From: Neoconidiobolus thromboides FSU 785
Lineage: Eukaryota; Fungi; Entomophthoromycota
DNA length: 64,000 nt
Reading direction: 5' to 3'
Assembly (NCBI GenBank): GCA_025603075.1
Contig: MU626321.1
Span: 1 to 64,000 of the forward strand
In this document: positions 3,365 to 63,895 of the stretch, piece by piece
Numbering within the stretch: position 1 is the stretch's first letter
Layout: every line of letters starts with the position of its first letter
The notes under the pieces: generated by a model
What the model was told of the DNA's origin: nothing
The model's input: only the letters and a program-made list of their open reading frames with translations
The model's database searches: none
Program-made: the position numbers and the translations under genes

Positions 3365-3471
3365 TATATGGGAGTGTTTTTTTACATTTCATTACTCCTC
3401 CGTTTTTTAAGCACTATTTGAATGGAAAATTTACTGCTAAAATTCTTAAACACAAAAATACATCCCTATAT
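3365..3471 (-). mobile_element. ~105-bp mini-TIR (MITE-like) element, copy 1
   Basis: TATATGGGAGTG...GCACTATTTGAATGGAAAA...ACATCCCTATAT matches the family consensus in reverse. Confidence 0.8.
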
Positions 3472-3860
3472 GTTATTATGATTATTATCACAAAAACTTT
3501 TACTATAAAAGTTGATCTTAATCCTTTTTTGCATTAGGGTACTTAGATAGTATTTAAAATATTGATCAAATGTAAAATAAAGTGAAAGTTACCAAGTATT
3601 TTAATTAGTATAAAAGCACTGATTTAAAGTTCAGTAAATGAGTTTATCTAATTAAAATCCTAATTCTCCTCTATTCAATAAAAAAAGTATAATATTCAAT
3701 GTAATATTTCTATTTGATACTAATCTTTTATAACTCAAATGGATAAATTAAAGCTTATTTTCGAAAATAGAACAATTTGCAATTAATTTTTCATTTAATT
3801 TCCACATAAATACGTAGAGTAAATATAACATTAAAAAAATTCAAATTATCTCTTTCAGAA

Positions 3861-5159
3861 ATGTCTGCCTCATCCAAAAGTTTTCGATTAGCTCATGATA
3901 TTATTGTCAATTTTTTGAAGTTAAATGGGTACGAAGAAACGTTAGAAACTTTCTACAAAGAAGGAGGTGATTTTTGCTCCTTAACTAAAGATACGGCTAT
4001 TACTGGATTTGAAGATAGACCTTTATTGGATATTATTACAGATTATTATTTAAAAGAAAAATTCCCTCAAGGCTTAGAAGTTAAAAAGTAAATTTGTTTC
4101 ATATCAACTTATTCTGAAATTCATGAGATTTTTTTTAGGAGACTGGATGTGCCTGTATTAAGTGATAAAGAGATTATTATAGATAATGTTATGGCTTTAG
4201 AGCCAATAGATAATATTCATTATTCAAACATACTATCCATTGTAACAACTACAATTTTAGACTCAAATTCAGGAAAACCAGTATTGATCTCATCTTCAAC
4301 TGATAAAAGTATAAAGTTAAGTGACTTAGAAACAGGTAAATTTATAGATTCGATAATTGATCCTAATTTAGGAGGAGCGGTTTTAAGTTTAGACATTCAT
4401 CCAAAACATAAAAATATATTACTTTCCTCATCCATGGATTTTACAGTAACTTTAACTGATATAACTAAGAATGAATTAATAAAGCGATGGAGCCATCATA
4501 AAAAATTTGTAAACATTGCCAAATTTTCGCCAGATGGTCAAGCCTTATTCTCAGCAAGTTATGATTATAACTTAGTTATTTATAAATCAAATCAAGGATC
4601 AATGGAAGACAATCAATATCCTAATTTTAAATATACAAAAGTTATCAATTTTGAAGGTAGAATTGAAACTGCAGCCTGGACTCCAGATAGTAAATATATT
4701 GTTGTTGCTGTTAGAGAAGATAATTATCTTTATTATATTAATGTTGAAGATTACGAAATATTAAAATATAATTTAAATAATAATGGGGATAACTTTGTAT
4801 CATTTAATATAATGGATATAAAAATATCACCTAATAAAAAACATGTATTATGTGCAACAGATCATAGATCTGGAAGATTGATTTTACTTTCTTTATTTTC
4901 TTCAACTCAATATAGAAATTACTATGGTGTTAAACAAGACGAATTATCTAATCCTAAGATTCAATTCCATCCATCTGGTAAATACTTTTTTGTTAATGAT
5001 GATGAATTTAATATTAATATTTTTGATATTAATAATGAAACTCCAATTGGTAAACTTAAAGGACATACTGGTATTATACGCTCATTAGATTTTAATGCTG
5101 ATGAAAATTTATTAATCTCTGGTTCTTATGATAAAACTATTAGGAAATGGAAGTTTTAA
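3861..5159 (+). CDS. LisH-motif plus WD40-repeat protein, 2 exons (3861-4087, 4139-5159), ~415 aa
   Basis: Exon 1 has a LisH-like motif (IIVNFLKLNGYEETLETFYKE). A GTAAAT...TTTTAG intron at 4088-4138 joins it in frame to WD40 repeats (e.g. GHTGIIRSLDF...SGSYDKTIRKW). Confidence 0.85.
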
Positions 5160-5354
5160 TAATGAGCTATTATACTGGTTTTAGGTTTATGATATTAATA
5201 AACTATGGTTACAAATAAATAAAATAAGAAGCCATAATTGAAGATATAGTATTAATCTTTATAAGTAATATTTTTCAACATTTAATTTTAAAAGAAAAAC
5301 ATAAAATACCATTTAGTGATATAACAATTTAACTAATTTTAATTTAATAATTAA

Positions 5355-5456
5355 ATATGTGGGATGTATTTTTGTGATTAAGAATTTCACTAACAAATTT
5401 TCCACTCAAATAGCGCTTAAAAAACGGAAAAATAATGAAACGTTCATACATACCAT
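5355..5456 (+). mobile_element. mini-TIR element, copy 2 (right end degraded)
   Basis: ATATGTGGGATGTATTTTTGTG...CCACTCAAATAGCGCTTAAAAAACGGAAAAATAATGAAA. Confidence 0.75.
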
Positions 5457-8078
5457 CAATATTTAATTCTATAAATTATTTTTCTAATAGTGTTTCAAAA
5501 GGTAAATATGTGATAATAGCCTAAAATTATGATATATAAGTTTAGGAATTAAGTTATAACTACTTACCTTTAAATAGATAATCTTTTATAATAAAAATTT
5601 ACTCTTATTTATTTGCCTTGTTTAAAGCCTAACTCTTAACATTAACGTTTATACCAAAAATTTATTTTAAAATATATGGTTAAATACCTCACATTAAGCT
5701 TAAACATTGCAGCCACATATTTTATAAAATTTAACCCCGATTTTTTAAATTTTAGGTAGCATAGAAAATGAACAAAACGTTGAATTAGAAGCCATTTTTA
5801 TATTAATAAATAGTTTAAAATACTAAAATGTTATAAAACATTGTCTATCTTAAGTGTACTTTCCTAAAAATACAATAAATTAAAAGATACCAAAACAAGC
5901 GTAAATGTAAATAAATCAAATAAAAAGGTTACTTTCGACTTTTCGAAAATTTAAACTACTTAAAAGTGATCAAAAAAATTAAAATACTTGAACAAAAAGT
6001 GCATTTATATTAAATCTCAAGCATCTAGTTAATATATTTAAAAAAATTAATGAACATTATAATGTTTGTAATTTAAGTAGCTCAATTCTCTGTTTGTTGA
6101 TAACATTTGACATTCAAACATATTTCCTAAGAATCTTATATTATCTTTTAAAGTACAGTATACGCTATTCAATTATAACAGATTTATTCGGATACTGCAA
6201 TCATTTAAGAATTTGACATTTTTTAATGTAATAGTGGAGTATGTATAAAATATTTAATAAAAAACAAACATAATTTTATTCTGGGATTTAGTTTGCATCA
6301 TTTTAATAAATATTCAGAAAAATCTAATTTAAACCTTCATCAAATGAAATTCAAAAAATTTCGTTTGGTAGCAGACTCTAGTAGTAACAAAAGCCTTGAT
6401 TTAAGGACTATTAGTAAAAATAACATTATCTATCCGATACCAAATGGGGCGATATTTTAGACAGACTGTTTACTTGAGTTTAAAACTATCAATTTAAACT
6501 AAACGTGATTAAACAACTTCTTAGCTTGTACTTTTTTCTCATTATAATTTAAATCATTAATATTTTCAATCCAATTAAAACCCTTAAATGAAATCAATGT
6601 CAAGTTAAAAAGTTTTCTCCGTTTAGTTTGAGAGTCAATAGAATAGTAAACCTAATATATTTTGATTTAATTTAAACATAATATGGGCATTTTTATTTTG
6701 TACTTGATAGGATTTGTCAATCAAGGTTTATTTGTTTTTATATTTGGCAAATACATGATTAAATTCCCAAGCCATGTTTAAATTGGATCATTAGATCAAC
6801 TAGCCTACTGTAAATACTAACAATTTATATAATAGGTTTAAAATTGACTTCAACTTAAAATGATTTAATTATGAATAATGATTAGATCAATTTCATTGAA
6901 GCGAATCATTGACATCATTGAGACATCATGCTTACAGCCATTTCATTCTTGAATTTATTGAATTGTTCTTAACAAGTTCTTAAATGCTGTATTTGACCAC
7001 CGAACTGAAGAAAGGTTGCATGATAACTGAGTAGCTTATAGCGAGTTAAATTAATTAACTAATAGATAAAATCCACTCAACTAATTTCAAGTTTAAATCC
7101 TAAATAGCTGTTACTAAACTTCAGGTTGAACGCTGAATTTTTGAATAAACACATCTTTTTTACATTATCCCTGTTGTTAATAAATTTAAATACAAGCCAT
7201 CAATCAATTAATTTATTATATAATAAATAAAAGAATTTCGATGATATAGCTTTGTGACAGTCTAGTTTTCATATATGAAAATTGAATTCATTATTGATTT
7301 ATTTCTTGATCAAATGATGTCGATTTGGGGGTTTGAAAAGGGTTATTCTTGGGGATACTTTCAACAGGAAGTTTCAACAAATTTATGTTTTCTTATAGAT
7401 TTAAGCTTATCAAGGTTTGTTTGATCAATAAATAAAGTTGACAAGACTTATAGTCTCAAAATAATCTGTATTAAGATAATAAACTATTCATTTTGTAATA
7501 TTAATGTACTCATTTTGAGATAAGAAAATGTCAAATTTTGCTCATTTATCAATTTCGTTCTCGAAATCAGTTGAGCATTAATTGTAAAATAGAACATTGA
7601 AAAATTTAGAAACTGTAGTTAGTTTTTTATTTGTTTATAAGATGGGCAAATTCAGTTCAAAAGAACAGGAATAGCTATTTTGATAATAGCTACTAACTAT
7701 TAAAAAGTAAAAGCAACAAAATTGTATTGTTCTTTATATATTAAAACATTATTTATATTTGAATTTTTTCAAGAAATGGTTATTAAAACTATATTAATAT
7801 TATTTCATATCTTCTTTATCAAATTAAATGTATAAGAATTCATTTATACCTTCAAAATCATTTTTCCATATTAGGCAATTTGCCTCAAAATTTAGAAATG
7901 AAGTAATCTTGTTTATTTTTAAGATGCATTATTCAAATAATATAAATAAAAAGTAACTAGAAAGTATTTCAGTTTTAAACAATTTGTTAGCTTTGTAGTT
8001 TGTAACTTTTTTGAATCTTTTCCTCTTTATAATATTTACAATACAATCAATTGATTTATTTGATACATTTTACTAACT

Positions 8079-11000
8079 ATGAAGCTTAATTTCTTAAAGC
8101 TTCTTCCAAGTTTACTTATACTTAATAGCGTATATAGTATCCCTGCTTTTAATACAATTAATGATTTCGATTTGGATGGAAATGTTTGTCCACGACACAA
8201 AGTTTCAGATTTAAAATGTAATATCCTATGTGTTAAAGATTTATCTCAATGTCCAGAAGGTGTGAAATTAGAATGTGCCGATGGCCAAGTGCCATGTGGT
8301 GATGGAGCTTGTCATAGCTCTTGTGATGGTATAAAGAATATATGTTCATGTTTAGACGACTCTACAGATCATGTTCCATGTTCCTCGAAACCAGTTATGG
8401 TAGATATTGATGCATTTGATCCTAGCATTAAAAATAAAATGCTAGCTAATAATTGCGGAGATAAATTAAATACAGCTACTGATCTCAATAACTGGTCTTC
8501 TGGAATTAATGATGAAAAATACTGGGCCGCTTGTCCACCAGCTCCAAGTCCTCAATTTACCTTTACAGAACCTATGTGGATTTCTGTTTTCTCTATACTT
8601 GGTTCAGAAATTTTATTAATCTTAATTTGGGCCGCTTATAAAAGAATAAGAGAAGGCAAGGTTCAACACATGTATGCTGTTGATACCTCACCAATTGAAG
8701 CAGATGAGAAAAAGGGAGCTGAAAACAATTCTGAGCTTGAAGATGAACCTTTCCCAATCAAAGGCTTTGTCAACGATTTTTTTGGTACTTTTATGTTATA
8801 CTCCTTTTTATTTATCAGTGTTGGATGGATTGTTTATCTCGCCGTTATTACTGCCGATTACTATGGTGCTATCAATGGAAAGCTTTATGGTATAGCCCAC
8901 GAAAATTACGATCTTTCTTCATCCATGTTTATTGGGATTTGGATTTTCGCTACTACTTGGTTTGTAGTGCTTAATGTCTTCCGTTTTCGCTTAAGAAACT
9001 TTTTCCGCATTCAAGTTAAGCCTCTTCAAGCTCAATACATTCAAATTGAACAGCCACAGATCCCTACAATCTTGTTGGACGATGGCTCTCAAATACTTGC
9101 TAAATTACGTCAAGTAGAACAAGGCTTAAAAGTAGCTTTAGGCGCTAATTATAGAATTACATCCACACAACTTTTAAGAACCTCCAATGGCTTATTATAT
9201 TTTAATTATCAATGCCGTCGTTATGTTTATAATGATAGTTCAACACACTTCCAACCCTTTGATTTTGATTTAGGAACTCATTCATCTCATTTCCTTAAGT
9301 TGAGTTCTGGTCTTTCAACCACAGAAGCTAATCGTCGTCTCGAACTCAAAGGTCCTAACTTTATTGAAGTTTATGTGCCATCTTTCGTCGTTGCTTTCCT
9401 TCAAGAATTCACTTCCTTTTTCTATCTTTATCAACTTATGATTATGTGGCTCTTTTATTATCTTGCCTACTATAAGATCGGTTTAGTAGATACCGCAGTT
9501 ATCTTTATATCAGCCCTTATTAAGGTAGTGGTAAGACTTAAGGCTGAAAGAAGAGTTAAAAAGATGGCAGAACATCAGGATCATGTCAAAATATTAAGAG
9601 ATGGTGAATGGAGTGATAAATCTACTGCCGACCTTGTACCAGGAGATATTTTCCAAGTTGAAAATAACAAAGTGGTCCCTTGCGATGCTATATTGATTAG
9701 TGGTAATATTGTTGCTGATGAATCCTCATTAACTGGAGAACCTTTACCCATCCGTAAATTCCCAGTAAAGGATGAAGAAACTGTTTATGATCGATTAGGT
9801 GCATCAAAAATTAATTCTTTGTTCTCTGGTACAACTGTCGTGCAAACTACACCTTCTAATGATGAACAAACAGTCACAGCCTTAGTTTACCAAACTTCTA
9901 CTTCTACTGATAAAGGTCAATTGGTTTATAAAATCTTATTCCCCAACCCAATTTCATTTATTTTTGATGAACAACTTAAAGTAGTTATTATTATTTTAGC
10001 TATTTGGGGTGTAGTTCTTTTCTGTTTATCATTATGGCTTCAACAAAAGGGTGGTACAGCCTCTTGGTTTTATGGTATGTTCTGTTTATCTCAAATCTTG
10101 TCCCCTATTTTGCCCGCTGCCTTGGTTGTAGGTCAATCTGTTGCTTCCAATGAATTAAGAAAAAAGAAAATTTTCTGTGTTGATTTGCCCAGAATCATGA
10201 TAGCTGGTAAAGTCCAAATTTTCTGCTTTGATAAAACTGGCACCTTAACGAAAGAAGGCCTAGAGTTTTATGGTGGGCAAATAGTTGGACCAGAAAAGAG
10301 ATTTGGCGAACTTAGATATGAACAAGAGGAATTTGATGAGCTTTTCCAACTTGGTTTAGCTTCATGTCATTCTGTAACTCAAGTGAATGGTACTTTAATT
10401 GGTAACCCAGTAGATATTGAAATGTTTACCTCAACCAAATGGAAATTACTTCAACCACCGTCCCCAGACTACGTTGATACCATGCAATCTCCAGATGAGA
10501 AACCATGGGAGGCACATATTGTAAAGCGATTCGAATTCGTTCATGCTAGAGCTTCTATGTCTGTTGCCGTTTTGGATTCAAATACTGGTCACGTTCACAT
10601 TTTTGTCAAAGGGTCTTTTGAGAAACTTAAAGATTTATCAAACCCAGCTTCAATTCCTAATGATTATGATAATGTCACTAATAACCTGGCTAAAGAAGGT
10701 TGTTATGTATTAGCATTAGCTCATCGTGACCTTGGTAAAATTGACATTGGCGCTTTAAAAGATATGAGCCGTGAAGAACTCGAAAAGGACATTAATTTAT
10801 TAGGTTTAATTGTATTCAAGAATCTCCTTAAAGAAGATACTGAGGAATCGATCCGCGAGTTAAAGGAGGGTAATACTCGTACTGTTATGATTACTGGTGA
10901 TACTGCTTTAACTGGTGTGTATATTGCTAAGGCTTGTAGCATGATGCCTAATACTTCTCAAGTCTATTTAGCTGAAACTGATGAAAATAAACAAGTTTAT

Positions 11001-12218: not shown

Positions 12219-12367
12219 TTTTTTTACTTTTTGATAATAATAATAATAAAGCTATAATTTTTACAAGACATAGAGTTTATAATCTCATAATTAAAATTTT
12301 AATAAATTAAGAGCAAAATGAAAAATGGAAAATAAAATAAAAAGACAGAATCGCATTATTTAAATTA

Positions 12368-13602: not shown

Positions 13603-14131
13603 GATTGTATTTGAAATTAAAATTAAAATGAAAAGGAAAGAAAGATTTATTGGAATTTTATTTAAAAGAATAAATCGAAAAATGAGTTTGATGTATTCTT
13701 TAAAATATAACTTATTAAATGATATTTGCTATGTTTTAAAATTCAAAACCTGCTTACTCCGAGATTTAAGTTTACCTTATTTAGTATATTTGCTTAAAAA
13801 TTGCAATTTTTATTTTTTGACAAGATCCTAAAATGGGTTACTTAGGAAATAACTCTATCAAAGTCCACTGTTTTTACATTGATTTAAATATAGTAACCTT
13901 ATAATATAATTAAACTATTTACAATTTGCTATGCTATATATTAAAAGAAGAAAAGAACAAACTTTCAAACCTAGTTTTGATAATTATTTATTATAACGTA
14001 GTGTTCAGTAGCTTGTATAAAGTGCCCAGACACTTAGAATTTGACTATTGTAAAATTGGATTAGTTTTAGATTAGCTATTATAAATTTCCAACATAATGC
14101 CAAATCAAGTGAAAAAAGTATTTTAAACCCC

Positions 14132-14236
14132 AAAGGGGGATATGTTTCTTGTTTAAGAATTTTATTACAATCTTTCACTTAAATAGCACCTAAAAAATGG
14201 AAAAATAATGAAACCAAAAAAAAACAACCCCAAATA
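14132..14236 (+). mobile_element. mini-TIR element, copy 3
   Basis: GGGGGATATG...TTTAAGAATTTTATTAC...CACTTAAATAGCACCTAAAAAATGGAAAAATAATGAAACC...ACCCCAAATA. Confidence 0.8.
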
Positions 14237-14733: not shown

Positions 14734-14835
14734 ATATGGGGATGTGTTTTTTTTAAGGATTTTACTAACAACGTTTTCACTCAGATAGCGCTCAAAAAAT
14801 CGAAAAGTAATGAAATCAAAAAAACATCCCCATAT
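14734..14835 (+). mobile_element. mini-TIR element, copy 4 (perfect 12-bp TIR)
   Basis: ATATGGGGATGT at 14734 and ACATCCCCATAT ending at 14835 are exact inverted repeats. Confidence 0.85.
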
Positions 14836-17529: not shown

Positions 17530-17632
17530 TAGTGGGGCTGTTTTTTTTGGTTTCATTATTTTTCCGTTTTTTAAGTGCTATTTGAGTGGAAAATTTGTTA
17601 GTAAAATTCTTAAACACAAAAATACATCCTCA
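17530..17632 (-). mobile_element. mini-TIR element, copy 5
   Basis: TAGTGGGGCTG...TTAAGTGCTATTTGAGTGGAAAATTTGTTAGTAAAATTCTTAAACACAAAAATACATCCTCA. Confidence 0.8.
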
Positions 17633-22654: not shown

Positions 22655-22761
22655 ATATAGGGATGTATTTTTTTGTTTAAGAATTTTATTAATGACCTTT
22701 CCACTTAAATAGCGCTTAAAAAATGGAAAAACTGATGAAACTAGGAAAAACATTACCGTAT
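22655..22761 (+). mobile_element. mini-TIR element, copy 6 (left arm of palindrome)
   Basis: ATATAGGGATGT...CCACTTAAATAGCGCTTAAAAAATGGAAAAACTGATGAAAC. Confidence 0.85.
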
Positions 22762-22864
22762 GAGGCTGTTTTTTTTAGTTTCATCAGTTTTTCCATTTTT
22801 TAAGCGCTATTTAAGTGGAAAGGTCATTAATAAAATTCTTAAACAAAGAAACATACTTCTATAT
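22759..22864 (-). mobile_element. mini-TIR element, copy 7 (right arm of palindrome)
   Basis: 22776-22847 is the exact reverse complement of 22672-22743. Confidence 0.85.
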
Positions 22865-24172: not shown

Positions 24173-24277
24173 TATATGGGAGTGTTTTTTGGCCTCATCG
24201 CTTTTTTCATCTTAAGTGCTATTTGAATGGAAAATTTGTTAGTAAAATTCTTAAACACAAAAATACAGCCCCATATA
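24173..24277 (-). mobile_element. mini-TIR element, copy 8
   Basis: TATATGGGAGTG...TTAAGTGCTATTTGAATGGAAAATTTGTTAGTAAAATTCTTAAAC...AGCCCCATATA. Confidence 0.8.
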
Positions 24278-34131: not shown

Positions 34132-34236
34132 ATATAAGGATGTATTCTTGTGTTTAAGAATTTTACTAATAATTTCTCTACTTAAATAGCACTTAAAAGA
34201 TGGAAAAATGATGAACCCAAAACCCCTTTCCTAATA
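34132..34236 (+). mobile_element. mini-TIR element, copy 9
   Basis: ATATAAGGATGTATTCTTGTGTTTAAGAATTTTACTAAT...AAATAGCACTTAAAAGATGGAAAAATGATGAA. Confidence 0.75.
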
Positions 34237-39949: not shown

Positions 39950-40660
39950 TCAAGCCATTGTAAAATCTGGTACTCAGGGTTTGGAGTCAAGAACAGCTAT
40001 TGCTGGGTTGACTACACTATAAGTCGAAAGGTCTTAGTTCATGTGACTAAGATAGACTTGGATTATGAGGAATAGCACGTAATAGGTTACAAGCTATATA
40101 AGACAAATAGAATAGACAATACTAATGTAAAATCTATGTAAAATACTATTAANNNNNNNNNNNNNNNNNNNNNNNNNNNNNNNNNNNNNNNNNNNNNNNN
40201 NNNNNNNNNNNNNNNNNNNNNNNNNNNNNNNNNNNNNNNNNNNNNNNNNNNNNNNNNNNNNNNNNNNNNNNNNNNNNNNNNNNNNNNNNNNNNNNNNNNN
40301 NNNNNNNNNNNNNNNNNNNNNNNNNNNNNNNNNNNNNNNNNNNNNNNNNNNNNNNNNNNNNNNNNNNNNNNNTTTATACTCTGAAAAGTATAAGTATCAA
40401 AATGAGAAGATAATATTCTTTGGGATGGAGTTAGAAATCCTCATAACAAATCAAACTAAGAACGTGGGATTGGTTTTCTCTGAACTCAAGAATACAACAG
40501 CTTAGGAGATTGTTATGTTATAATTAACCATGGGACTGACAAAGCGATATTTCACACCATAGATGTTTATGAAATTTTATTGGATAACACATAATAAAAT
40601 TTATCAATCTAGAATTGAATCATCTAAAGCTAAAGGATTGATTCTATTAAAACTTTAAAA
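39950..40660 (+). mobile_element. possible decayed non-LTR retrotransposon fragment spanning a gap
   Basis: Stop-interrupted frame after the gap (KYKYQNEKIIFFGMEL...LTMGLTKRYFTP*MFMKFY...IYQSRIES) loosely resembles the region downstream of LINE RT (MG..F.P....Y...R.EY). Weak. Confidence 0.25.
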
Positions 40661-40700: not shown

Positions 40701-40805
40701 ATATGGGGATGTTTTTTTTGGCTTCATTACTTTTTCCATCTTCTAAGCGCTATTTGAGTGGGAAAATTGTTAGTAAAATTCTTAAACATAAAAATATATC
40801 CCCAT
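40701..40805 (-). mobile_element. mini-TIR element, copy 10
   Basis: ATATGGGGATGT...TAAGCGCTATTTGAGTGGGAAAATTGTTAGTAAAATTCTTAAAC...ATATCCCCAT. Confidence 0.85.
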
Positions 40806-41153: not shown

Positions 41154-41260
41154 ATATGAAAATGTTTTTTTTTGGTTTCATCACTTTTTCCATCTTTAAG
41201 CATTATTTAAGTGGAAAGATTTTTAGTAAAATTTTTTAGTACAAAAATACACCCCCATAT
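41154..41260 (-). mobile_element. mini-TIR element, copy 11
   Basis: GGTTTCATCACTTTTTCCATCTTTAAGCATTATTTAAGTGGAAAG...AATACACCCCCATAT. Confidence 0.75.
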
Positions 41261-41764: not shown

Positions 41765-41869
41765 ATATGGGGATATATTTTTTTATTTAGGAATTTTCCT
41801 AACAATCTTTTCACTCAAATAGCCCTTGAAAATGAAAAAAGTGATGAAATCAAAAAAATATCCTTATAT
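41765..41869 (+). mobile_element. mini-TIR element, copy 12
   Basis: ATATGGGGATAT...CACTCAAATAGCCCTTGAAAATGAAAAAAGTGATGAAATC...ATCCTTATAT. Confidence 0.8.
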
Positions 41870-42879: not shown

Positions 42880-42981
42880 TATACTTAGACATTTTTTTGG
42901 TTTCATTACTTTTTGCATTAAGTGCTATTTGAATGGAAAAATTGTTAGTAAAATCCTTGAACAAAAAAATATATTCCTATT
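42880..42981 (-). mobile_element. mini-TIR element, copy 13
   Basis: GGTTTCATTACTTTTTGCATTAAGTGCTATTTGAATGGAAAAATTGTTAGTAAAATCCTTGAAC...ATATTCCTAT. Confidence 0.75.
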
Positions 42982-52165: not shown

Positions 52166-52263
52166 ATTTGGAGTGTTTTTTGGCTTTTGCTTTTTCCATT
52201 TTTTAAACATTATTTAGTGGAAAAATTGTTAGTAAAATTCTTACACAAAATACATTTCCAATT
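52166..52263 (-). mobile_element. mini-TIR element, copy 14 (degraded)
   Basis: TTTGGAGTG...TTTTTCCATTTTTTAAACATTATTTAGTGGAAAAATTGTTAGTAAAATTCTTAC...TACATTTCCAAT. Confidence 0.7.
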
Positions 52264-52327: not shown

Positions 52328-52430
52328 ATATAGGGATGTGTTTTTTTGTTTAGGAATTTTACTACAATCTTTCCACTCAGATAGCGCTTAAAAAATGAAA
52401 AAATAATGAAACTAAAAAACAGCCCCATAT
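52328..52430 (+). mobile_element. mini-TIR element, copy 15
   Basis: ATATAGGGATGT...CCACTCAGATAGCGCTTAAAAAATGAAAAAATAATGAAAC...AGCCCCATAT. Confidence 0.85.
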
Positions 52431-54018: not shown

Positions 54019-55436
54019 ATGGAGAAAGAAGGTAGTGTAGAGATTAAAGAAATTGATGGAAAACTGAGTAGAAGGGCTTTGAAATATAAGGCTAGAAACG
54101 GTGGAGAATACTCACAGAGAAGTAAGAGTTGGGTGATTATAGTTGAACATTTTAACTAATGCTTTGGTAGAGCATAAAAGTAAAGAGGAACTTGAGGCAG
54201 GTATTGAACGAGCTAGACAGATGGGAGGTATTGTAGAGTATCAATTGCCAACCGGAAAGCTGCAATTTATATTGGGTAATTGCAGCCTTTAAAAGTAGAA
54301 TTTAAGATTAACTTTTCTATAAACATGTTAGGTAAACAAAGTGCTAATTTAAAGGCTATCAAAAAAGCAACAAATGTCAAAATTGATTTGGATGAATCAA
54401 GGGCCCTCAAGTCAACAAGTGAATTTTGCATAGCAGGTTTGTTTAATATTATAACTAGTGAGTTTTCATAATTCATTTTTAATCCAGAAATTTCTGGTTC
54501 ACCATACCAAGTCAAATTGGCTGTGGCCATGTTAGATCATTGTGTAAAAAAGGTAAAATTATTTAGTGGCAATGAAATTATAAAATAATCAACTATACTA
54601 GTAGACTTTGGAATACAACCAAAGTTATACCCACTTTATTTCAATACCAATCATTGATAGTGGGCTTGAGCTTAAGTTTAAACAAATCATTGACGAGATT
54701 AACGAAATGAACTTACCTGATATTAGAGCAAAATATTTGACAGATCATCGAAGACTTCACATTAGCTTAGGGAACTTAAAATTACCAAGGGAAAAGCATA
54801 TAACTGAAGCCGAAAAGTTATTATTATCATTAAAACCAGAGTTAAATAACATTATTGGGTTTTTAGGTTTAAATGTTGAGTTTAAGGGGATTGGTACCTA
54901 TCCCGAAAATGAACCCGGTAAGACATTATTTTTTGACAGTAGTTAAGTTAATCTTTTTTAATTTTTATTAGAAAAAGCTAAATATGTTTATGTTAAAGTG
55001 GATTATGACTCCAATGAAAATTTAGGTAAAAAGTTTAAAGATGCCACAGGTAATTGTTAAGTCATTAATTATTATATATATTAAATTGGATAATTAGACT
55101 TAATAAGAGAAAGATTTTATCAAGCTGGGCTTTCGCTTGACTGTGATTTAATATTTAATGTAAGTGCTTAAATTTATATTTCTGTTAATTTAAAAGCTTA
55201 TTGCTTTCATTTAGGAATATGTCATCATAATAAAACACCAATCTGAGAACTACCACGGTCATGATTTAGCACAGGATGGCAAGTATTACAGCACCTTCAA
55301 TGCTCTACCCATATTAGAGAGATTTTCAGATATTAAATTAGGCAATTTTAAAATCCCTTTGATTCAGGTGTGTATAAGAGACACGTTTAGAGCTAATGGT
55401 AGGTATGGTAGTATCGCAGAGTTGAACCTTTCTTAA
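54019..55436 (+). CDS. ASCC1-like protein, paralog B (KH domain plus 2H phosphoesterase fold), multi-exon
   Basis: Spliced product MEKEGSVEIKEIDGKLSRR...FILGKQSANLKAIKKATNVKID (KH)...EISGSPYQVKLAVAML...THFISIP...LHISLG...FNALPILERFSDIKLG...NGRY. GT-AG introns keep the frame. Confidence 0.82.
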
Positions 55437-56476
55437 CTTTTTTTTACCTTTTTTTATTTGTTAATTCTGTTCATCGGATTTATTCATCCGTTTTTCAGCT
55501 GCATGTTGATTAATGTGTCAATAGCAGTGTACCTACCTTTAACCTTTCTTTTAATAGGCTTAACTTGACCTAGTTAGTTTTAGCTTAATAAATATTGAAT
55601 ATCATAACATTTGAAGTTTTGATTAGCTTTTAGTCAAATTTTGATTTTAAATTACTAAATATTTTGTTTATCAAGACAAATATAGAGATCAAAATCAAGT
55701 CGATATATAGGCATGGATTATCAACTGATAAAGTTTACATGGTTTATTTATCGACAGGCTGTTATTAATAAAGACTACCCTATACAAGTTAAGCATATTG
55801 TAAGTTAAGTACATATTTACTTATCTATTAAGAACTAATAAACTGTAAATATTAGCATTTTAAGAAACAAGATATTAAAGTAATTCAAATGCTTAATTTA
55901 ATATCATTTCGATATTATATAATGTAAAATCAAATAGCTTATGAATCAATATTATTTTAGATAATACTCTCTTTGATAGAGTAATTTTTTATTTGTAAAT
56001 GATTGTTTAAAACTATCTAGAACTATCAAAAAGCTCAAGGAATAAAAAACCATGATTAAACTATTTGTCTAAAAAATTCGATTGCTCAAAAAGAATTTTC
56101 CAACGAATCAAGCTTAAGTATTTTAAATAAATTCATTCCCAATTTAGGGATGTATACATTCTTTATAAAATATTTTTATCATACGATCTGATAGCCCTAA
56201 CCAAAAAAAAAATATATATAAACAAAAAACATTGACTATTAATCAGCTTTTAACAATAATATCAATAGAGTGTATATTGTAGATAGCTAAGTTGTACTAA
56301 TTTTCAAGTTTTTGTTGAATACTTAAGATTTTTTTGATAGAGCCATATATAAAAAGTGCTTAACGATTTCTATATATGAAAATAGTAAATTTAAGAATAA
56401 AATATTCCTTTTAAAATCAGTTAAAAACAAAATAAACAAACAATTTTATTTTCCACATTTAATACAAACCCTAAAA

Positions 56477-57955
56477 ATGGATGGCCGCACAATGTTTGAA
56501 GATTTTGAGATAAAAAAATCTTCAAAAACAAAAGTAACTACACGTTTGGATCATTTAACATGGAGTCGTTGGCACACCAAACTCGTTATAGTTTTAGGCA
56601 TAGGGTGGGCATTTGATGCTTTTGAAATCACGATTATCACTGCCATTTTACCAATCATCAAGCGCTACTTCGATGTAACTTCAGAACAAACTTCTTTAAT
56701 TACCACCTTATGGCTTGTTGGTGCCATTGTTGGAAGTTTGGGATTTGGTTTGATTGCTGATCGATATGGAAGAAAGTTTACCTTCGTCATTACCATGCTT
56801 TTATATTCTTCTATGACCCTTATCACTTGTTTCTCGCCCACTTTTGAGTTTCTGTTAGCATTCCGCTTCTTGACCGCTATCGGTGTAGGTGCTGAATATA
56901 CTGCCATTAATGCAACGATTGTAGAATTTATACCTTATAGATATAGAGGCAGAGCTAATGCTGCTGTGATGGGTTTTTGGTGTTTGGGAGCCTTGATCGC
57001 ACATGGTCTTCAAGTGCCAATTATTAGGTATTTGAATGATTTTTGGGCCTGGAGAGTAGGCTTTTTGATTGGTGCTTGTGCCTCCTTTTTTATTATATTT
57101 ATACGTCGGTTTCTGTTAGAGTCCCCAAGATGGCTGCTATCGCAAGGACAATTTACAAAAGCAGAAGAGATCACTATGAGAATCGAAGAGTTATGCCAGC
57201 AGCAAGACAATTTAATTAACAGTGGCCCAGAAGCAGAAATCATTTTTTATGCTCATCCAAAAAATTCGTTTTTTAGAATTCTAAAGAACTTATTTTTAAA
57301 TTATCCATTTACTGTCTTTTTTGCTGCTATACTCAACGCGTCTCAAGCTTTTGCTGATTATGGTGTCAGTAATTTATTATCGCTCCAAATCTTAGAAGAT
57401 GTGGGTATAACAGGATCTGATAATGCCCTATTTTTCTTATATGGGGTCATATGTACAGTACCAAGCTATATTTATGTAGTCCTTATGATCGATCGAGTAG
57501 GAAGAAAGCCATTGTTAATTTTTCATTTTATTATATGTATTATTGCTGTTGCCTGCTTTATACCCGCAGTTAATAATTCAGATCCAAAAGCAGCCTTAAT
57601 TGGAATCCATTGCTTTTATCAGTTTACTTATAGTGCAGTTATGGCAACGATTTATACAACTATTTCAGAAGCTTTTCCAACTCATCTAAGGGCGACAGGA
57701 ATTGGGTTTTCAGTTGCTATTGGTCGTGTGATCGCTGCTATTGCTCCAAGAATTTTACTGGCCATTTATGAAAATAATACATTAAATTTGGTTATCCCAT
57801 GTGTGGTTATTATATGCTTCTTATCTTCTGGTTTGTTAGTGTCCCTTCTTTGGATGTGGTTTGGTATTGAAGGTAAAAATACGAGGTTAGAGGATATGGG
57901 CTATAAAACTGAAGTGACTACTTACCAAGGTATAGCGCTAGAAACATTATCTTGA
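56477..57955 (+). CDS. MFS transporter (sugar/organic-ion-like, bacterial-type N-terminus), intronless, 492 aa
   Basis: GLIADRYGRK motif A, RFLTAIGVGAEY, ESPRWL, IDRVGRKP, EAFPTHLRATG; about 12 hydrophobic segments. Confidence 0.9.
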   Translation: MDGRTMFEDFEIKKSSKTKVTTRLDHLTWSRWHTKLVIVLGIGWAFDAFEITIITAILPIIKRYFDVTSEQTSLITTLWLVGAIVGSLGFGLIADRYGRKFTFVITMLLYSSMTLITCFSPTFEFLLAFRFLTAIGVGAEYTAINATIVEFIPYRYRGRANAAVMGFWCLGALIAHGLQVPIIRYLNDFWAWRVGFLIGACASFFIIFIRRFLLESPRWLLSQGQFTKAEEITMRIEELCQQQDNLINSGPEAEIIFYAHPKNSFFRILKNLFLNYPFTVFFAAILNASQAFADYGVSNLLSLQILEDVGITGSDNALFFLYGVICTVPSYIYVVLMIDRVGRKPLLIFHFIICIIAVACFIPAVNNSDPKAALIGIHCFYQFTYSAVMATIYTTISEAFPTHLRATGIGFSVAIGRVIAAIAPRILLAIYENNTLNLVIPCVVIICFLSSGLLVSLLWMWFGIEGKNTRLEDMGYKTEVTTYQGIALETLS

Positions 57956-58155
57956 GATAGATCACTTTGATTGAAGAGCCTCTAATTTTATTTATGATTT
58001 CTAATATGAGCTATTATTCCCTGAATTTTAATAATTAAATATATTTATTAAGTAGAAATAAATAGTTGTTTTAATTAAGCAAACGTCTTTAAAGTTTGTA
58101 TTTTATTGTTTTGGAAATAGAAATACAGTGTAAAGCCAACAGTCATTTATCATCT

Positions 58156-58488
58156 CTATTTATCTAAGAAAGTAAGATCTAAGGTTTTACCATCTCGGCC
58201 ACCATCACCTTCAAATAATCTTTTAACTCTTTTGCACTCACTATCTAAAATTTCGATGTCTACTGAAAATCTACCAAGGCATTCTCCAAAATCTTTAGCA
58301 ACACACTCCCATCCATTTTCACGTTTAGTCCAACATGGTGGACATCCAGTTCCTCTACAGCGTGGCCTTTGACCTCTATAATCTTCTTTGTTAATTACTA
58401 TACAATTATCTTCGTCTGGTCTAGGGCATTGGAACTCTTTCCCAAATGCTAAAGTCAATAAACAAGCTATGATAAGACTACGGTTCAT
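58156..58488 (-). CDS. Small secreted cysteine-rich protein, 110 aa
   Basis: Signal-peptide-like MNRSLIIACLLTLAFG; 8 Cys in the mature part; single exon. Confidence 0.75.
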   Translation of the reverse strand: MNRSLIIACLLTLAFGKEFQCPRPDEDNCIVINKEDYRGQRPRCRGTGCPPCWTKRENGWECVAKDFGECLGRFSVDIEILDSECKRVKRLFEGDGGRDGKTLDLTFLDK

Positions 58489-58676
58489 TTTTGGTTTAAT
58501 TTTTTAACTGAGTGTTATTTTTAAAGTCATTATATATCCTACACCTATCGATCTTCTTATTGACCTTAGGCTTAGTTTGATTTGGATTATCAAGTTTTTA
58601 TTATCATTTTAATTTTGTTGCTTATTTCATTAAAATAGTTGATCAGGATAATAGTATACTAAGTAAAATAATAACA

Positions 58677-58771
58677 ATATAGGGATATTTTTTTTGGTTT
58701 CATTACTTTTTCCATTTTTTAAGCGTCATTTGAGCGGAAAAATTGTTAGATAAAAAAATACATCCCCATAT
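58677..58771 (-). mobile_element. mini-TIR element, copy 16 (internal deletion)
   Basis: ATATAGGGATAT...AAGCGTCATTTGAGCGGAAAAATTGTTAG then directly ATAAAAAAATACATCCCCATAT. Confidence 0.8.
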
Positions 58772-59316
58772 TAAAAATTTTAGCAATGGTGTTGGAATAA
58801 CTTTTCAAAAAATATTGACATTGAGTATTATATTTAATGTTATAAATTGAGACGAATTATATCATCAAATAATTTGATATTGTTTGTAAATAATATTAAT
58901 TTAACATTACTTTTTAAATATTAAATATTAGAGTTATATTAAGTTGTTATAACAGTACACTAATGTACTTGGAAACTAACTTTTGACCTTATTGATAAGC
59001 CTATTTGATTTAAATGATTCTTTAATTAAAGATTTGTATTATCGATATTATATTATAAAATTGCTAACATTAAAATTATTATTGTTAAAATCTTAGTCAA
59101 ACTGAAATTTGAAAATCGGGTACTAAAATTATAAACTCAAAACATGGTCATCAGCTAGAACAAATCAATGAGAAATAGAGATAAAAAACTAAATGAAAAA
59201 TTGACTTAAAAAGAAGCCTTCGAAAATAGATCAACAGGCAATAATGTAAAGTAAGAAGTATATAAATAAAATAAAATAAAATAAAATAAAATAACCTTTA
59301 TCAAATAATATAAAAA

Positions 59317-59728
59317 ATGTTTAAAAAAATCTATGTAATAGCCTTATTAGCTCCCTTAGTTTACGGAGCAAGTTTAGGTAATTTTCTTAAAATTTTGATA
59401 AAATAACAAACTAAACCATAAATTAGAAAGACGAAGTGAGGTTCTCACCATTCCAGAAACAAGAGCATCAAAGATTTGTGTAAACCTTGATCGTGACGTT
59501 AGAGTAATTAATTTACCACGTGGTTATAGAGCCAAGGTATATAACGAAAGAGATTGTTATGGGCGTGTTTTGCTTCAAAGTAGCGAAAGAAGAATCACTG
59601 ATATTCCAAGAAGCGCAGAGTCAGTTTATGCGTACAGAGATAATGATGATATCGTCATTAATCTTTCGGATTTTAGTGATAGTCGTGGAAGAAGTTCCTC
59701 TTTTTCAGATAATTTAGTCGATTTTTAA
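59317..59728 (+). CDS. Small secreted protein, beta/gamma-crystallin-like motif, 2 exons (59317-59377, 59427-59728), 120 aa; not in ORF track
   Basis: Spliced: MFKKIYVIALLAPLVYGASL-ERR-SEVLTIPETRASKICVNLDRDVRVINLPRGYRAKVYNERDCYGRVLLQSSERRITDIPRSAESVYAYRD...VDF*. The 49-nt GTAATT...TTAG intron keeps the frame. Confidence 0.8.
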
Positions 59729-60315
59729 ATTTGAAATTGATGATTTTTGTAATGTATATTAAATTTTGAAAATAAACTATTAAATTAATAATACCTTATT
59801 TTAATTTTAATCTCAGCATATTAAATGTCTTAATTTTAGACACATGGGATTAGATAATTTTCTAATGATGTAGGTTGGTATTATACTTGAGTCTAGATAA
59901 TGAAATTTGTTATCAAAAGGTTCTTTGAGCCTCATTTGCATCCAATGACTTTTTGATAGTATATAAAGATTTATTTATTTATCTGAACCTTTCCTTTTTT
60001 AAAATTTTGCGCAGGCTTGCTAATAGTCTTTGAGCCATAAGGTGTATTTGAAATGCTATGAGAGATCATTTTAACGGCGACACCCATCTAGGAAGGATTT
60101 TTACAAAGTATATGTATCTTATAAAAATATTAGCAAACCAAGAAAAGGGCAAAAAACATAAAATATAGCTTAAAATCTAATTTAAGTACTATAAAATAAC
60201 AATATTATAAATAAGCAAATGATACAAGGCTTAATGGGTTTTATAAAGCTACTTAAGCAGCCATAGTTGCAAAAAGAAAGGAGATAATTTAAAGTAGTAC
60301 AACAAATAGTTTATG

Positions 60316-60421
60316 ATATAAGGGTATCTTTTTTGGTTTCATTACTTTCTATCTTTTAAGCGCTATTTGAGTGGAAAAATTATTAGTAGAATTCTCAAAC
60401 CTAAAAATACATCCCCCATAT
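60316..60421 (-). mobile_element. mini-TIR element, copy 17
   Basis: ATATAAGGGTAT...TAAGCGCTATTTGAGTGGAAAAATTATTAGTAGAATTCTCAAAC...ACATCCCCCATAT. Confidence 0.8.
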
Positions 60422-60741
60422 AGAAAAATTTTCATATTTGAGTTTGCTTAAAAATTATAGTACATCAGTGTTAGTACGATTTAAAGTTAAGCAGATTGTT
60501 AGTATACTTTCTGGTAAGAGATACTCAAAATATTGAAGTCATTAAAAAATCGATTTCATCATCGTTTAAGTTGATATATAGAGGACTAATAATTGGGTTA
60601 GTAGAAGGCAGTACGTTTAGTAGGTAATCTTTAATCTACAACTAATGCACATATCAGATTAAATTTAACAAAGCTTAAAAATAAACCATGAAACTAAATA
60701 CAAATATATATTATAAAAAACAACTATGAGTTTGAATTTAG

Positions 60742-60845
60742 ATATAGAGATGGAAGTTTTTTTATCTTATTGCTTACATCTTTTAAGCCCCATTTGAGCG
60801 GAAAAATCGTTAGCAAAATTCTTGAACACAAAAATACATACATAT
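60742..60845 (-). mobile_element. mini-TIR element, copy 18
   Basis: CATCTTTTAAGCCCCATTTGAGCGGAAAAATCGTTAGCAAAATTCTTGAACACAAAAATACATACATAT. Confidence 0.7.
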
Positions 60846-61323
60846 ATTACTTTCCTATCAACTTTTTATTTTTTAAACTACAAAGTGCACGTAAAATTTT
60901 AATATAATAACTTTTTGAATAAAGGTTGTTTTATGTTAGAAGTACCCTGAATATGCTTTAGCTTAAAGGCTAACAAAGCATAATATTTACAATCCTTTTA
61001 ATAAAACTATCAATAAAAGCATTGATAAAGCTAGCATTTTTCCATTTATTTTTATCAAAGTTAGCCATTTAAAGCCATCTATAAAATCTTTTTTGTCCTG
61101 TAACTATCAACTATTTAAATTACTCAAAAAAGTTACTTAATGTTTTAATTTTTATGTTGTTTATTCAATACCTATACTCATCAACTTATTTAAAACAACG
61201 ATTGTATGCTTCCTTTAGTCCTAAGATGAGGGGAGCTAAAGGATATAAACCTAAGTATAGCTCAGACACTTATTTGATCGTTTCATCTCCTAAACAAACT
61301 CTACACTTATATCCTCAAACTAT

Positions 61324-62211
61324 TTATGTTTTTTGCAGAAAAGATTTTACTTCGCCTGCAATTCCACTATGTAATGTAAGTACTAACAATCCATTGAAAA
61401 TCATTCCGAAAACAAATAAAATACTAGCAGTTGAGTTGAGTTCCTTGGCTTGTTTAAAAGAATCATCATATACATACTTGAATGTCGATTCGACAAATAA
61501 ACTGATAAGCGAAACAAGCATACATGTTACGTAGATAGCTAAGATCAAGTATACTTTAAGCGATGCCTTTTTCAAACTTGAGAACGTTTTTCCACTACCT
61601 GCTTCACTACTAGATCCTAGTTCTGCTGACACAATTTCTTTAAATTCACTAATCTCATTAGCTATACAATAGTATGAATATGATAATAATCCAACACCAA
61701 TAAAACAACTTAAAAGAGAATAATGATAAGTGACCGAAGCTAATATATTGTTTCTAACATCTAGTAAACAGCTTAGTTTTGATGATGAAATTGCAAATGA
61801 ATTTGTTGCAGCACAAGTAATTAATAGAAGTGTAAAAATAGTTAAGTTAATTATTACAGGACGATAAGCATATTCGAACAACACTGACTTTTTAATTTTT
61901 CCTAATCTTTCCATCGATAATAAAGCGTTTAAAACAATTTCGTATTGATAAATAAATAATATTATAAAACCATAAAATGAACACCCATATTGATTTTCTA
62001 TTAATTTTTGTCCTTTAATAAAATAATAGATGAGATCAGATAGCACTGCAATCGGTGCAAGAAACTCTAAAAAAGCTAAAGCCATTATCAACTTTACATC
62101 AAATCCTTTACAAGATAATTTGCTTGCAAAATAAATTAAAAATGAATTGACTATTAGACATATTGAAGTTGCGCAAATAGCTGTCAAATAAAAAGGTGTA
62201 AAGATATACAT
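61324..62211 (-). CDS. Seven-transmembrane rhodopsin-like (class A GPCR-like) receptor, intronless, 295 aa
   Basis: Seven hydrophobic segments, TM1 Asn (VNSFL), Cys at start of TM3 (GCSFYG), ER at end of TM3 (SMERL, DRY-like), ECL2 Cys (LSCLL), TM7 Asn (FNGL). Confidence 0.75.
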   Translation of the reverse strand: MYIFTPFYLTAICATSICLIVNSFLIYFASKLSCKGFDVKLIMALAFLEFLAPIAVLSDLIYYFIKGQKLIENQYGCSFYGFIILFIYQYEIVLNALLSMERLGKIKKSVLFEYAYRPVIINLTIFTLLLITCAATNSFAISSSKLSCLLDVRNNILASVTYHYSLLSCFIGVGLLSYSYYCIANEISEFKEIVSAELGSSSEAGSGKTFSSLKKASLKVYLILAIYVTCMLVSLISLFVESTFKYVYDDSFKQAKELNSTASILFVFGMIFNGLLVLTLHSGIAGEVKSFLQKT

Positions 62212-63212
62212 TAAGGCTAGATCAATTAATCAAACAAAAAAGCTTCCCTTTGTTCATATAATAGATTTTTATCTTAAAATCAATTAAAACAGAAAGCTAA
62301 AATGAAACACTACCCTTACTGGAGCAAGGATCATAAAAATAGGTTTTTACTTTTCTTATTGAAAGCTAATTTTAGCGGGTTATTCTTAATCTTATGTTTC
62401 CAATCATGTTCTTTGTAAGTTTATCACTTGTATAATGCTATAGAAATATTTACGATTATTAATTTAAGCTAATATAATCGTACCTTGTGGAAATATTTGA
62501 TAAATATCTAATATTTATTATAAGGAACATAGTAAACAATAGCGCACTTAATATAGACGATCATAAGAGATACAACTAACACAATCTTAAAAAATAAAGT
62601 TGTATTACTTTTAAAAAATAGAATCACCTTCACGAAGTTGGTAAAATTATTAGTCTGAGTGCACAATCGTTTCTTGCTTCTTGCTTTCTATCTTTACAAC
62701 TTATATGAAAATCTTACGTTTATTCCCATGGTAACTTAATTATGCTACTTTATAATCCCTCCCAGTTTTATGTTTTTACAAAATTTAGCTACAATATCCA
62801 AATGTCAATAAACAGAAAAATGACAAAAACCAAAATGCAAAGTATGAAGGTTTCAATAATATTCCCTGATATACCAATACAAATGTTAAAAATATAATTG
62901 TATTATTTATAACTATACTGACTATTGGAATAACTAATAGATTAAATGACATGTTAAGGGTTTTGTAAAGCCAAATAAGTTTTAAGTTTTTTAAATCCCA
63001 AGCTGTTGTGTTGCTTATTATGTAAAGTATTAATCGATTAAATTTATTTAATTTAGAAATTAATGTTACTCTTGAAACAAAAATAACCCTTAATGCTAGA
63101 AATTCAAAAAAGTTGGTATTAAATCATTATTCAAACTTAAGCGCATTATAGCCTCTGCAACTCTGTCACAGCTTAATTAACAGTTTATTTAATAGTAAAA
63201 CTTTGCTAGAAT

Positions 63213-63310
63213 ATATGGATGTACTTTTTTAAGAATTTTACTAACAATTTTTTCGCTCAAATGGGGGCTTAAAAGATGTAAAAAATAAACCCAAAAAAAC
63301 ACCTCCATAT
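63213..63310 (+). mobile_element. mini-TIR element, copy 19
   Basis: ATATGGATGT...TTAAGAATTTTACTAAC...CGCTCAAATGGGGGCTTAAAAGATG...ACACCTCCATAT. Confidence 0.75.
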
Positions 63311-63793
63311 AGCTAAAGGTTAGTGATTGGCCATTAAAAGACTAAAGATATATTAATGGTTCTAAAAATTAGTGCAAACAGGCTGGAATAGAGTTGTAAC
63401 AGCTGTATATCAGCCTGAAACAGACTTGAAGCTGTTTTTAAATAGCTACAATTATAGTAAAATAATTTAAAAGAACAAAAGTATATTGGGATTCTAACTT
63501 GTTTGAATCACTTTTTGATATGATTCATTAAGGGCATTTTAAAATATTGAGATTTATTGTACTTAAACCAAGACATATACTAATATTATTTTATACAACG
63601 TAAAGGCAACTTCTAACCACACTAAATTTAATCTTACATTATTCTATGCTTATTCTAATACAATAAATCTAGATAATATTTGTAATGTTATTTAACAATT
63701 ATTATCCAAATTTGATTTTAAAAATGTGATTTATGATTCATATTCAAATTCAAATTTAGTCATCTTTTCTAACTTTTTTTAACGAAAGCTTTT

Positions 63794-63895
63794 TATGGGG
63801 ATGTATTTTTAGGTTTAAGAATTTTACTACCAAATTTTCCGCTCAAACAGCGCTTAAAGAATAGAAATGATGAAGTCAAAAAAACATCCCCTTAT
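63794..63895 (+). mobile_element. mini-TIR element, copy 20
   Basis: TATGGGGATGTATTTTTAGGTTTAAGAATTTTACTAC...CCGCTCAAACAGCGCTTAAAG...ACATCCCCTTAT. Confidence 0.8.

Follow-up and report, generated by a model that had tools for sequence, protein, structure and literature searches.

A 98-bp MITE of Neoconidiobolus thromboides and its probable link to a decayed Sola2-type transposon

The short repeat that recurs throughout the first 64,000 nucleotides of contig MU626321.1 of Neoconidiobolus thromboides FSU 785 (the window) is a genuine 98-bp non-coding MITE, an ordinary sort of element. The explanation we favor, with a probability of about 0.85, is that a DDD transposase of the cut-and-paste type mobilised it in trans and that it is linked to a decayed Sola2-type transposon. 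In this model, the gene-less 98-99 bp element would have inserted each time into a 4-bp AWWT site, usually ATAT, duplicating the site, and the transposase would have come from a ~2.4-kb family or from a close, now unsampled Sola2 subfamily. Both the MITE and the long family may now be largely or wholly inactive.

Copies, ends and target site of the MITE

The terminal motif of the repeat occurs 22 times in the 64-kb window, compared to 0.62 occurrences expected by chance. Using an iterated nhmmer profile, we recovered 20 copies and no more, with E-values from 1e-15 to 1e-26, between positions 3370 and 63891, nine in the orientation of the original prediction's consensus and 11 reversed (Table 1). 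Both the predicted number, 20 copies in both orientations, and the predicted consensus, which equals that of the profile, were thus borne out.

The predicted dimensions required correction. The unit had been given as ~100-107 bp, with 10-12 bp TIRs ending in (T)ATAT. Intact elements are 98-99 bp and the window copies 87-99 bp, with GGGG...CCCC as the borders and ATAT outside the element. Since the flanking (T)ATAT is duplicated target, only 8 bp remain as perfect TIR; in the consensus these read GGGGATGT / ACATCCCC. In the TIR helix, which joins columns 3-10 with 95-102, 78% of cells are paired. The element lacks coding capacity and is too short for a gene-sized ORF.

Table 1. MITE copies in the window, with strand relative to the first consensus, flanking bases and nhmmer E-values
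Position	Strand	Description	Flanks	E
3370..3467	-	MITE copy, 98 bp	ATAT / (T)ATAT	8e-20
5360..5455	+	MITE copy, 3' end (consensus orientation) decayed; profile positions 14-96		1e-21
14136..14231	+	MITE copy, 96 bp	ATTT / CTTT	1e-16
14738..14831	+	MITE copy, 94 bp, perfect 8-bp tips	ATAT / ATAT	3e-20
17534..17631	-	MITE copy, 98 bp, between PAF-AH paralogues 1 and 2; 93% identity to consensus	TAGT / AGTC	5e-25
22659..22757	+	MITE copy, left arm of inverted pair		7e-23
22762..22858	-	MITE copy, right arm of inverted pair		6e-22
24178..24272	-	MITE copy, 95 bp	ATAT / ATAT	2e-23
34136..34226	+	MITE copy, 3' tip (consensus orientation) decayed		2e-20
40705..40803	-	MITE copy, 99 bp; best preserved in window, 94% identity to consensus	ATAT / ATGT	2e-26
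41158..41256	-	MITE copy, 99 bp	ATAT / ATAT	2e-19
41769..41863	+	MITE copy, 95 bp		4e-20
42887..42978	-	MITE copy, tips decayed		7e-19
52169..52259	-	MITE copy, 91 bp; matched non-ATAT duplication	AATT / AATT	9e-15
52332..52426	+	MITE copy, 95 bp	ATAT / ATAT	2e-22
58681..58767	-	MITE copy, 12-bp internal deletion seen in alignments	ATAT / ATAT	5e-18
60322..60416	-	MITE copy, 95 bp		2e-23
60750..60843	-	MITE copy, old, 73% identity to consensus		3e-19
63215..63306	+	MITE copy, 92 bp	ATAT / (T)ATAT	3e-16
63797..63891	+	MITE copy, 95 bp, perfect tips; matched non-ATAT duplication	ATAA / ATAA	1e-21

When the left arm of the inverted pair is reverse-complemented, it is near-identical to the right arm over ~80 bp, and the two have private variants in common. 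Judged from these sequences, the right arm is a local inverted duplicate of the left.

An assembly gap at 40153-40372 was ruled out as lying in or adjoining a MITE copy; it falls within an unrelated 465-bp TG...CA solo LTR (window 39958-40556) with CCAT on both sides. The gap flanks are colinear with nine other copies of this LTR. Because eight of the nine place 86 bp between the flanks (88 bp in the other), the 220 N written there are too many and overstate a gap in which ~86 bp are absent. The reading frame is irrelevant at this gap.

Identical 4-bp flanks were present at 31 of 41 MITE copies with good tips (permutation mean 14, maximum 20), while identical 5-bp flanks were present at none. 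The duplication was ATAT at 21 copies, and the ten matched pairs of other sequence were ATTT (four), AAAT (three), AGCT, ATAA and ATCT. Filled and empty sites could also be compared, as MITEs lie within some copies of the long family. The MITE at L036:1506-1596 corresponds to a single ATAT in the paralogous long copies L027, L034 and L038, that at L038:2778-2875 to a single ATAT in L036 and L033, and that at L030:2106-2200 to a single ATAT in L036, L033 and L031. Two further MITE insertions lie in a long-element stretch covering the transposase region (L029:478-1101). The matched non-ATAT flanks, together with the filled and empty paralogous sites, place ATAT outside the MITE. Thus, the target duplication is 4 bp and the GGGG...CCCC boundary, previously considered impossible to fix by eye, is established; a 4-bp AWWT site, mostly ATAT, replaces the TA or AT target first suggested. 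We rejected a Tc1/mariner-type (Stowaway-like) MITE, which would duplicate TA, as the whole of ATAT is duplicated relative to the empty sites. We also rejected a partial match at L005:318-366 as a long-element end: it is a MITE split by a 229-bp repeat, which is itself a homologue of the ~2.4-kb element's 5' end.

Shortness, the lack of coding sequence, TIRs, the target duplication, filled and empty sites, a copy number in the thousands and the lack of a transposase in the window together support the original description of a very small MITE mobilised in trans.

A long family encoding a Sola2-like transposase

A coding family of ~2.4 kb is present elsewhere in the genome. It has GGGGnTGT tips and an ATAT duplication as in the MITE, beginning with ATAT followed by GGGGCTGTCC and ending with CAGACAACCCC followed by ATAT. 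A 687-bp repeat block proved to be the 3' third of this element, and its loci led to the transposase, a protein of ~580 aa. Searching the genome with a clean transposase core (L034:1093-1737) gave at least 135 matches at E<=1e-20. None of the scored long-family copies holds an intact transposase gene, all being broken or partly unread; the longest uninterrupted frames among them are ~415 aa. In one copy, the frame is open both before and after a stretch of 490 unread bases. As originally stated, no partner transposase lies in the window, where tblastn detected no transposase fossil at E<=1. Likewise, none was found in twenty small contigs and contig starts.

The protein has 906 relatives in a representative protein library. 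In 20 of these relatives, D21, D105, H141-G142-K143 and D147 are invariant. An AlphaFold model (pLDDT 86.6) gave retroviral integrase catalytic cores as the best matches among solved structures, and the predicted fold is RNase H-like with a D..D..D triad. Pfam assigned no family to the core or to nine of the ten relatives scanned, and no transposase family to any of the ten; Sola transposases are described as having no Pfam match (PMC5751038). A weak protein-atlas pointer to DUF7869 was unconfirmed by the Pfam scan.

By inspection of printed sequences, without a computed score, six blocks of the transposase (RSTFxK..P, RTDxCxxCxxY, DFK[EQ]N, LNHxS, WxDxxxHF[KR]S and HGKSxxDxHF) match Sola2_DFa-2 and Sola2_PPa-1 (PMC3627910 supplement). 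The three blocks with the acidic residues fall among these six. Duplications made by Sola2 elements are AT-rich, 4 bp long and of the form AWWT, including ATAT, AAAT and ATTT (PMC3627910). The long family therefore appears Sola2-like, in a comparison made by inspection with Sola2 references.

How closely do the two families correspond? Their ends are about 70% identical over 50 bp. Alignment of the 5' ends scored 13 (shuffle mean 4.4, z 4.7) and that of the 3' ends 19 (shuffle mean 6.3). The original prediction had envisaged long elements with the same termini; the ~2.4-kb family is a candidate, but its extreme tips agree with those of the MITE at only 8 of 11 positions. Since this falls below the Repbase rule of thumb, which takes positions 1-11 with one mismatch (PMC4455052), the sampled long family is probably a relative of the MITE's parent rather than the direct parent.

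Agreement at only 8 of 11 positions could also mean that the MITE belongs to one of the other superfamilies whose duplications are AT-rich and 4 bp long, namely Sola1, Sola3, Ginger or Academ; the long family would then be a co-resident with convergent GGGG tips. AWWT duplications are made by Sola1 elements as well and have been termed a hallmark of them (PMC3845634), and our long families were sampled from part of the genome. We nevertheless consider this unlikely, as the likeness is not confined to the tips: the subterminal sequences at either end align colinearly, and the 3' end aligns far better in colinear than in reversed orientation (z 6.4 versus 2.4). Moreover, the duplication is identical in length and sequence in the two families, which also resemble each other in age and in their great abundance, and long copies repeatedly carry MITEs inside them.

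Abundance, decay and the internal stems

A diagnostic 17-mer of the MITE, allowing up to 2 mismatches, had 5,577 matches in the genome (2,796 forward and 2,781 reverse, thus using the strands equally), while a reversed control had 89. Because this 17-mer finds 17 of the 20 window copies (a sensitivity of 85%), we estimate a total of ~6,400 copies. The original prediction had called the element a major architect of intergenic DNA. With about one copy every 3.8 kb genome-wide, its density fits that description, but its share of the AT-rich 24.6-Mb genome is only roughly 2.6%. ORFs of at least 90 aa make up 46% of the window, yet all 20 copies there lie clear of them (P about 4e-6; weighting by ATAT sites gives about 3e-5), in keeping with the claim that the repeat never lies inside a CDS. 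The twenty small contigs and contig starts contained 37 MITE matches. Several small contigs have MITE copies at or adjoining their ends.

Identity to the consensus has a median of 88%, and the oldest copies diverge from it by 27-31%. Decay is neutral and AT-biased, without selection on the stems. The family should be masked when intergenic features of this genome are annotated.

A role as a structured ncRNA or protein-binding site, which the original prediction had kept open, was unsupported. The covariation check was run, and covariation in the stems equaled that of shuffles: 82.8% of cells in the named stems were paired, compared to 82.5% in shuffles, and compensatory changes were no commoner. 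RNAalifold predicted no consensus pairs in 69 copies, and Rfam had no matches for the MITE. As there is no covariation, no RNAalifold fold and no Rfam match, the stems are inherited sequence, not selected structure. It is accordingly highly improbable that the host kept the repeat as a cis element (structured ncRNA, terminator or insulator, or protein-binding site) for its stems and AGCGCT palindrome: the consensus can form the named stems, no part is better kept than the interior block around TAGTAAAATTCTTAAAC, and all copies are intergenic, but pairing is as expected from shuffling, the strands are used equally, insertions carry target duplications with empty paralogous sites, including within dead transposase genes, and decay is AT-biased, extending to 27-31% divergence in the oldest copies.

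We see a slim chance that some of the ~6,400 copies were recruited by the host, with the well-kept interior block and the central AGCGCT as a putative dispersed binding site, or as a transcription boundary where genes are closely packed. If so, a Sola2 burst would have seeded a genome-wide regulatory network in an early-diverging fungus.

Comparison with known elements

The Stowaway and Tourist elements of plants and mimp of Fusarium are short, non-coding and TIR-bounded, reach very high copy numbers, are moved in trans, and lie near genes yet outside coding sequence. These classical MITEs duplicate TA (Tc1/mariner) or TWA (PIF/Harbinger), whereas the fungal MITE described here has a 4-bp duplication.

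The Sola1_NA MITEs of the insects Bombyx mori, Rhodnius prolixus and Heliconius are also miniature non-autonomous Sola elements that insert at AWWT with a 4-bp duplication (PMC3845634). They are 200-700 bp long, their GGACCG... termini span 28-36 bp, and they descend from Sola1 parents and number about 100-260 copies (PMC3845634). The fungal MITE, at 98 bp, is shorter and more numerous (~6,400 copies); its tips are GGGGATGT, and its partner family is Sola2-like.

The long family resembles the dictyostelid Sola2 elements (DFa-2 of Dictyostelium fasciculatum and PPa-1/4/5 of Polysphondylium pallidum) in its 4-bp AT-rich duplications, short imperfect TIRs and six common transposase blocks (PMC3627910). 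Those elements span 10-15 kb, include Fanzor1 genes and number 2-12 copies (PMC3627910). In contrast, the fungal family is ~2.4 kb with a single ~580-aa gene and at least 135 fragments, and its putative 98-bp derivative numbers in the thousands.

In a survey of fungal cut-and-paste transposons, Sola2 was found only once, in Aspergillus flavus, and Sola elements were suggested to have entered fungi by horizontal transfer (PMC5751038). Neither Sola nor MITE is mentioned in the searchable text of the repeat analysis of this genome (PMC11105155). Our results add a probable Sola2 family in Zoopagomycota, consisting of coding relics and a very large MITE burst; the MITE is notable only because Sola2 has hardly been recorded in fungi. 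The nearest named relative of the transposase is PVU96560.1 of Furculomyces boomerangus (Harpellales), a partial, unannotated hypothetical protein with 41% identity to the core (E 1.6e-39). F. boomerangus, like the host of the window, is an early-diverging (zoopagomycote) fungus. The existence of this close relative hints at a possibly greater age of the Sola2 group among such fungi.

Boundaries and target-site duplication

Allowing up to two mismatches, the terminal motif GGGGATGTnTTTTTG matched the window 22 times (0.62 expected), and a repeat scan recovered families on both strands. An nhmmer profile iterated until convergence found exactly 20 copies of the non-coding element (E 1e-15 to 1e-26), confirming the number in the original prediction, and its consensus equals the one proposed there. 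G+C content across the window is 18-37%, and eukaryotic genes are present for a P-type ATPase, an AAA ATPase, a sugar transporter, THO1 and listerin, as well as a PAF-acetylhydrolase (PAF-AH) array.

Oriented copies read ...ATAT-GGGG(A/C)TGT...ACATCCCC-ATAT... To place the boundaries, we combined copies from the window and from elsewhere in the genome and examined the flanks of the 41 with well-kept tips. The 4-bp flanks were identical in 31 of these copies (permutation mean 14.1, maximum 20), while identical 5-bp flanks occurred in 0 of the 41. Ten matched pairs were other than ATAT (ATTT, AAAT, AGCT, ATAA, ATCT); window copies with such flanks are in the table. Moreover, where the element has inserted into a longer repeat, the interrupted copies of that repeat read ATAT-element-ATAT and several uninterrupted copies have one ATAT, which is direct proof of a 4-bp duplication. 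Thus, the element is 98-99 bp long and ATAT is its duplicated target, rather than the unit being ~100-107 bp with a TA or AT target as first proposed. Of the 10-12-bp terminal inverted repeats (TIRs) described earlier, the inverted tips are present, but the real TIR is 8 bp and the remainder is duplicated target. A weak palindromic preference, A-N-Y-[ATAT]-R-N-T, surrounds the insertion site (31 copies, a small and partly non-independent sample).

One ATAT in a transposase gene elsewhere in the genome (codons ...HDSAYAG...) is a recurrent target, filled in four copies of the long element that carries this gene. Since the insertions there lie in both relative orientations, this site was hit independently at least twice. 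Two long-element copies have a second site in common, in one orientation.

Insertions of the element with matched flanks other than ATAT, or at recurrent sites (L numbers are DNA pieces from elsewhere in the same genome, with local coordinates)
Feature	Piece	Coordinates	Flanks
Matched non-ATAT flanks	window	63797-63891	ATAA/ATAA
Matched non-ATAT flanks	window	52169-52259	AATT/AATT
Site at ...HDSAYAG...	L030	1887-1982	ATAT
Site at ...HDSAYAG...	L032	1849-1940	ATAT
Site at ...HDSAYAG...	L036	1506-1596	ATAT
Site at ...HDSAYAG...	L039	1196-1290	ATAT
Second common site	L027	2505-2599	
Second common site	L040	1287-1383	

Abundance, decay and internal stems

We estimated copy number across the 24.6-Mb assembly (799 contigs) with a 17-mer taken from the best-preserved part of the interior, allowing up to two mismatches. 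There were 2,796 forward and 2,781 reverse sites, compared with 40 and 49 for the reversed 17-mer used as control. As the probe detected 17 of the 20 window copies, correction for this sensitivity gives ~6,400 copies genome-wide, one per 3.8 kb, or ~2.6% of the genome. None of the 20 window copies overlaps an ORF of at least 90 aa, although such ORFs make up 46% of the window (P ~4e-6, or ~3e-5 if weighted by ATAT sites), in agreement with the earlier observation that the element is never inside a CDS.

Identity to the consensus had a median of 88% (range 69-95%; 73% to 94% for window copies), and several alignment columns split ~50:50, marking at least two subfamilies. Transitions predominated among substitutions (574 versus 200), strongly from G/C to A/T. 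In an alignment of 69 copies, per-site decay was 18.7% for G to A and 14.3% for C to T, compared with 3.4% for A to G and 5.9% for T to C. This bias is in line with a drift of the genome towards its very low G+C.

The persistence of internal stems had left room for a structured noncoding RNA, and the three proposed helices (TIR, TTTTCCA/TGGAAAA and AGCGCT) are indeed paired in 82.8% of cells. However, shuffled alignments gave 82.5%, no covariation measure in these helices exceeded shuffles, RNAalifold predicted no consensus pairs in the 69 copies, and searching the window against Rfam gave no match. These stems go back to the founder sequence and are decaying without compensation.

Two window copies at 22659-22858 are arranged head to head with 4 bp between them. 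Because they share private variants over ~80 bp, the pair arose by local inverted duplication of a single copy rather than by two insertions; its right arm adjoins the fourth, decayed PAF-AH paralogue. Assembly gaps 641-1524 and 1856-2346 fall inside a Gly/Ala/Asn-rich gene with a 36-bp-period repeat at the left end of the window. The gap at 40153-40372, which touches no copy of the element and no coding frame, is inside a 465-bp TG...CA solo LTR (39958-40556; TGTGAAAT...ATTTCACA) with a 4-bp duplication, CCAT, on both sides. Its flanks are colinear with nine other solo-LTR copies, with 86 bp between the flanks in eight and 88 bp in one. A first look found 661 candidates of this LTR family in the genome at 91-93% identity; one copy, in L022, is placed in the middle of a copy of the element.

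A long coding family and its transposase

Consistent with the original prediction that no partner transposase is present, tblastn of the window found no transposase match at E<=1. Elsewhere in the genome, a coding sequence recurs at loci around other repeats. Searching with a clean catalytic core (L034:1093-1737, minus strand, 215 aa) gave at least 135 genome matches at E<=1e-20. The scored matches were all broken or short, with longest frames of ~415 aa; in the L035 copy, 490 unread bases are flanked by open frame on either side. The long element is ~2.4 kb (for example, L035:589-2951, or L037:2766-284 minus one copy of the short element), starting with GGGGCTGTCCTAATTGGTTTCAGAAT after ATAT and finishing with ...AATAATGAAACTAATTCAGACAACCCC before ATAT. 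In the orientation first reported, the short element is ~70% identical to these ends over 50 bp (z 4.7 and 6.4 versus shuffles), and it aligns to the 3′ end far better than in reversed orientation. A coding family with similar ends, as had been sought, exists, but just 8 of the first 11 bases match. Thus, the sampled long family is probably related to the parent and is not clearly the parent.

A 229-bp repeat (L005:97-325 and many contigs; 1,289 first-look candidates) is 84% identical to the 5′ end of the long element, to which it is homologous, and may be a second non-autonomous derivative. In L005, it splits a copy of the short element at its centre.

Pfam had no match for the transposase. 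A representative protein library contained 906 relatives, 19 at E<=1e-30; among ten clusters examined, only one relative had a name, a hypothetical protein from the fungus Furculomyces boomerangus. When 20 relatives were aligned, D21, K23, D105, G107, H109, F110, H141, G142, K143, D147 and F150 were invariant. In structure, an AlphaFold model (pLDDT 86.6, pTM 0.84) matches the catalytic cores of retroviral integrases, which have an RNase H-like fold. One distant relative of the core (P0139 and its cluster) is 1,136 aa long, carries a C-terminal ubiquitin hydrolase (UCH) domain and may represent a fusion or domesticated form.

Comparison with Sola2 elements

In all respects tested, the element is a MITE, as originally inferred. 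In a survey of fungal cut-and-paste elements, Sola2 was found only once (PMC5751038), and a text search of a repeat analysis of the N. thromboides genome (PMC11105155) found mention of neither Sola nor MITE. The MITE family therefore appears to be undescribed so far, though of a known kind. Sola2 is its best-supported class. Sola2 target duplications are 4-bp and AT-rich (AWWT; ATAT, AAAT, ATTT) (PMC3627910); AWWT is also used by Sola1, and the transposase was compared with Sola2 references only. Compared block by block, by inspection of the printed sequences rather than by computed alignment, the transposase has in common with Sola2_DFa-2 and Sola2_PPa-1 (supplement of Bao and Jurka, 2013; PMC3627910) the RSTFxK..P and RTDxCxxCxxY region, DFK[EQ]N, LNHxS, WxDxxxHF[KR]S and HGKSxxDxHF.
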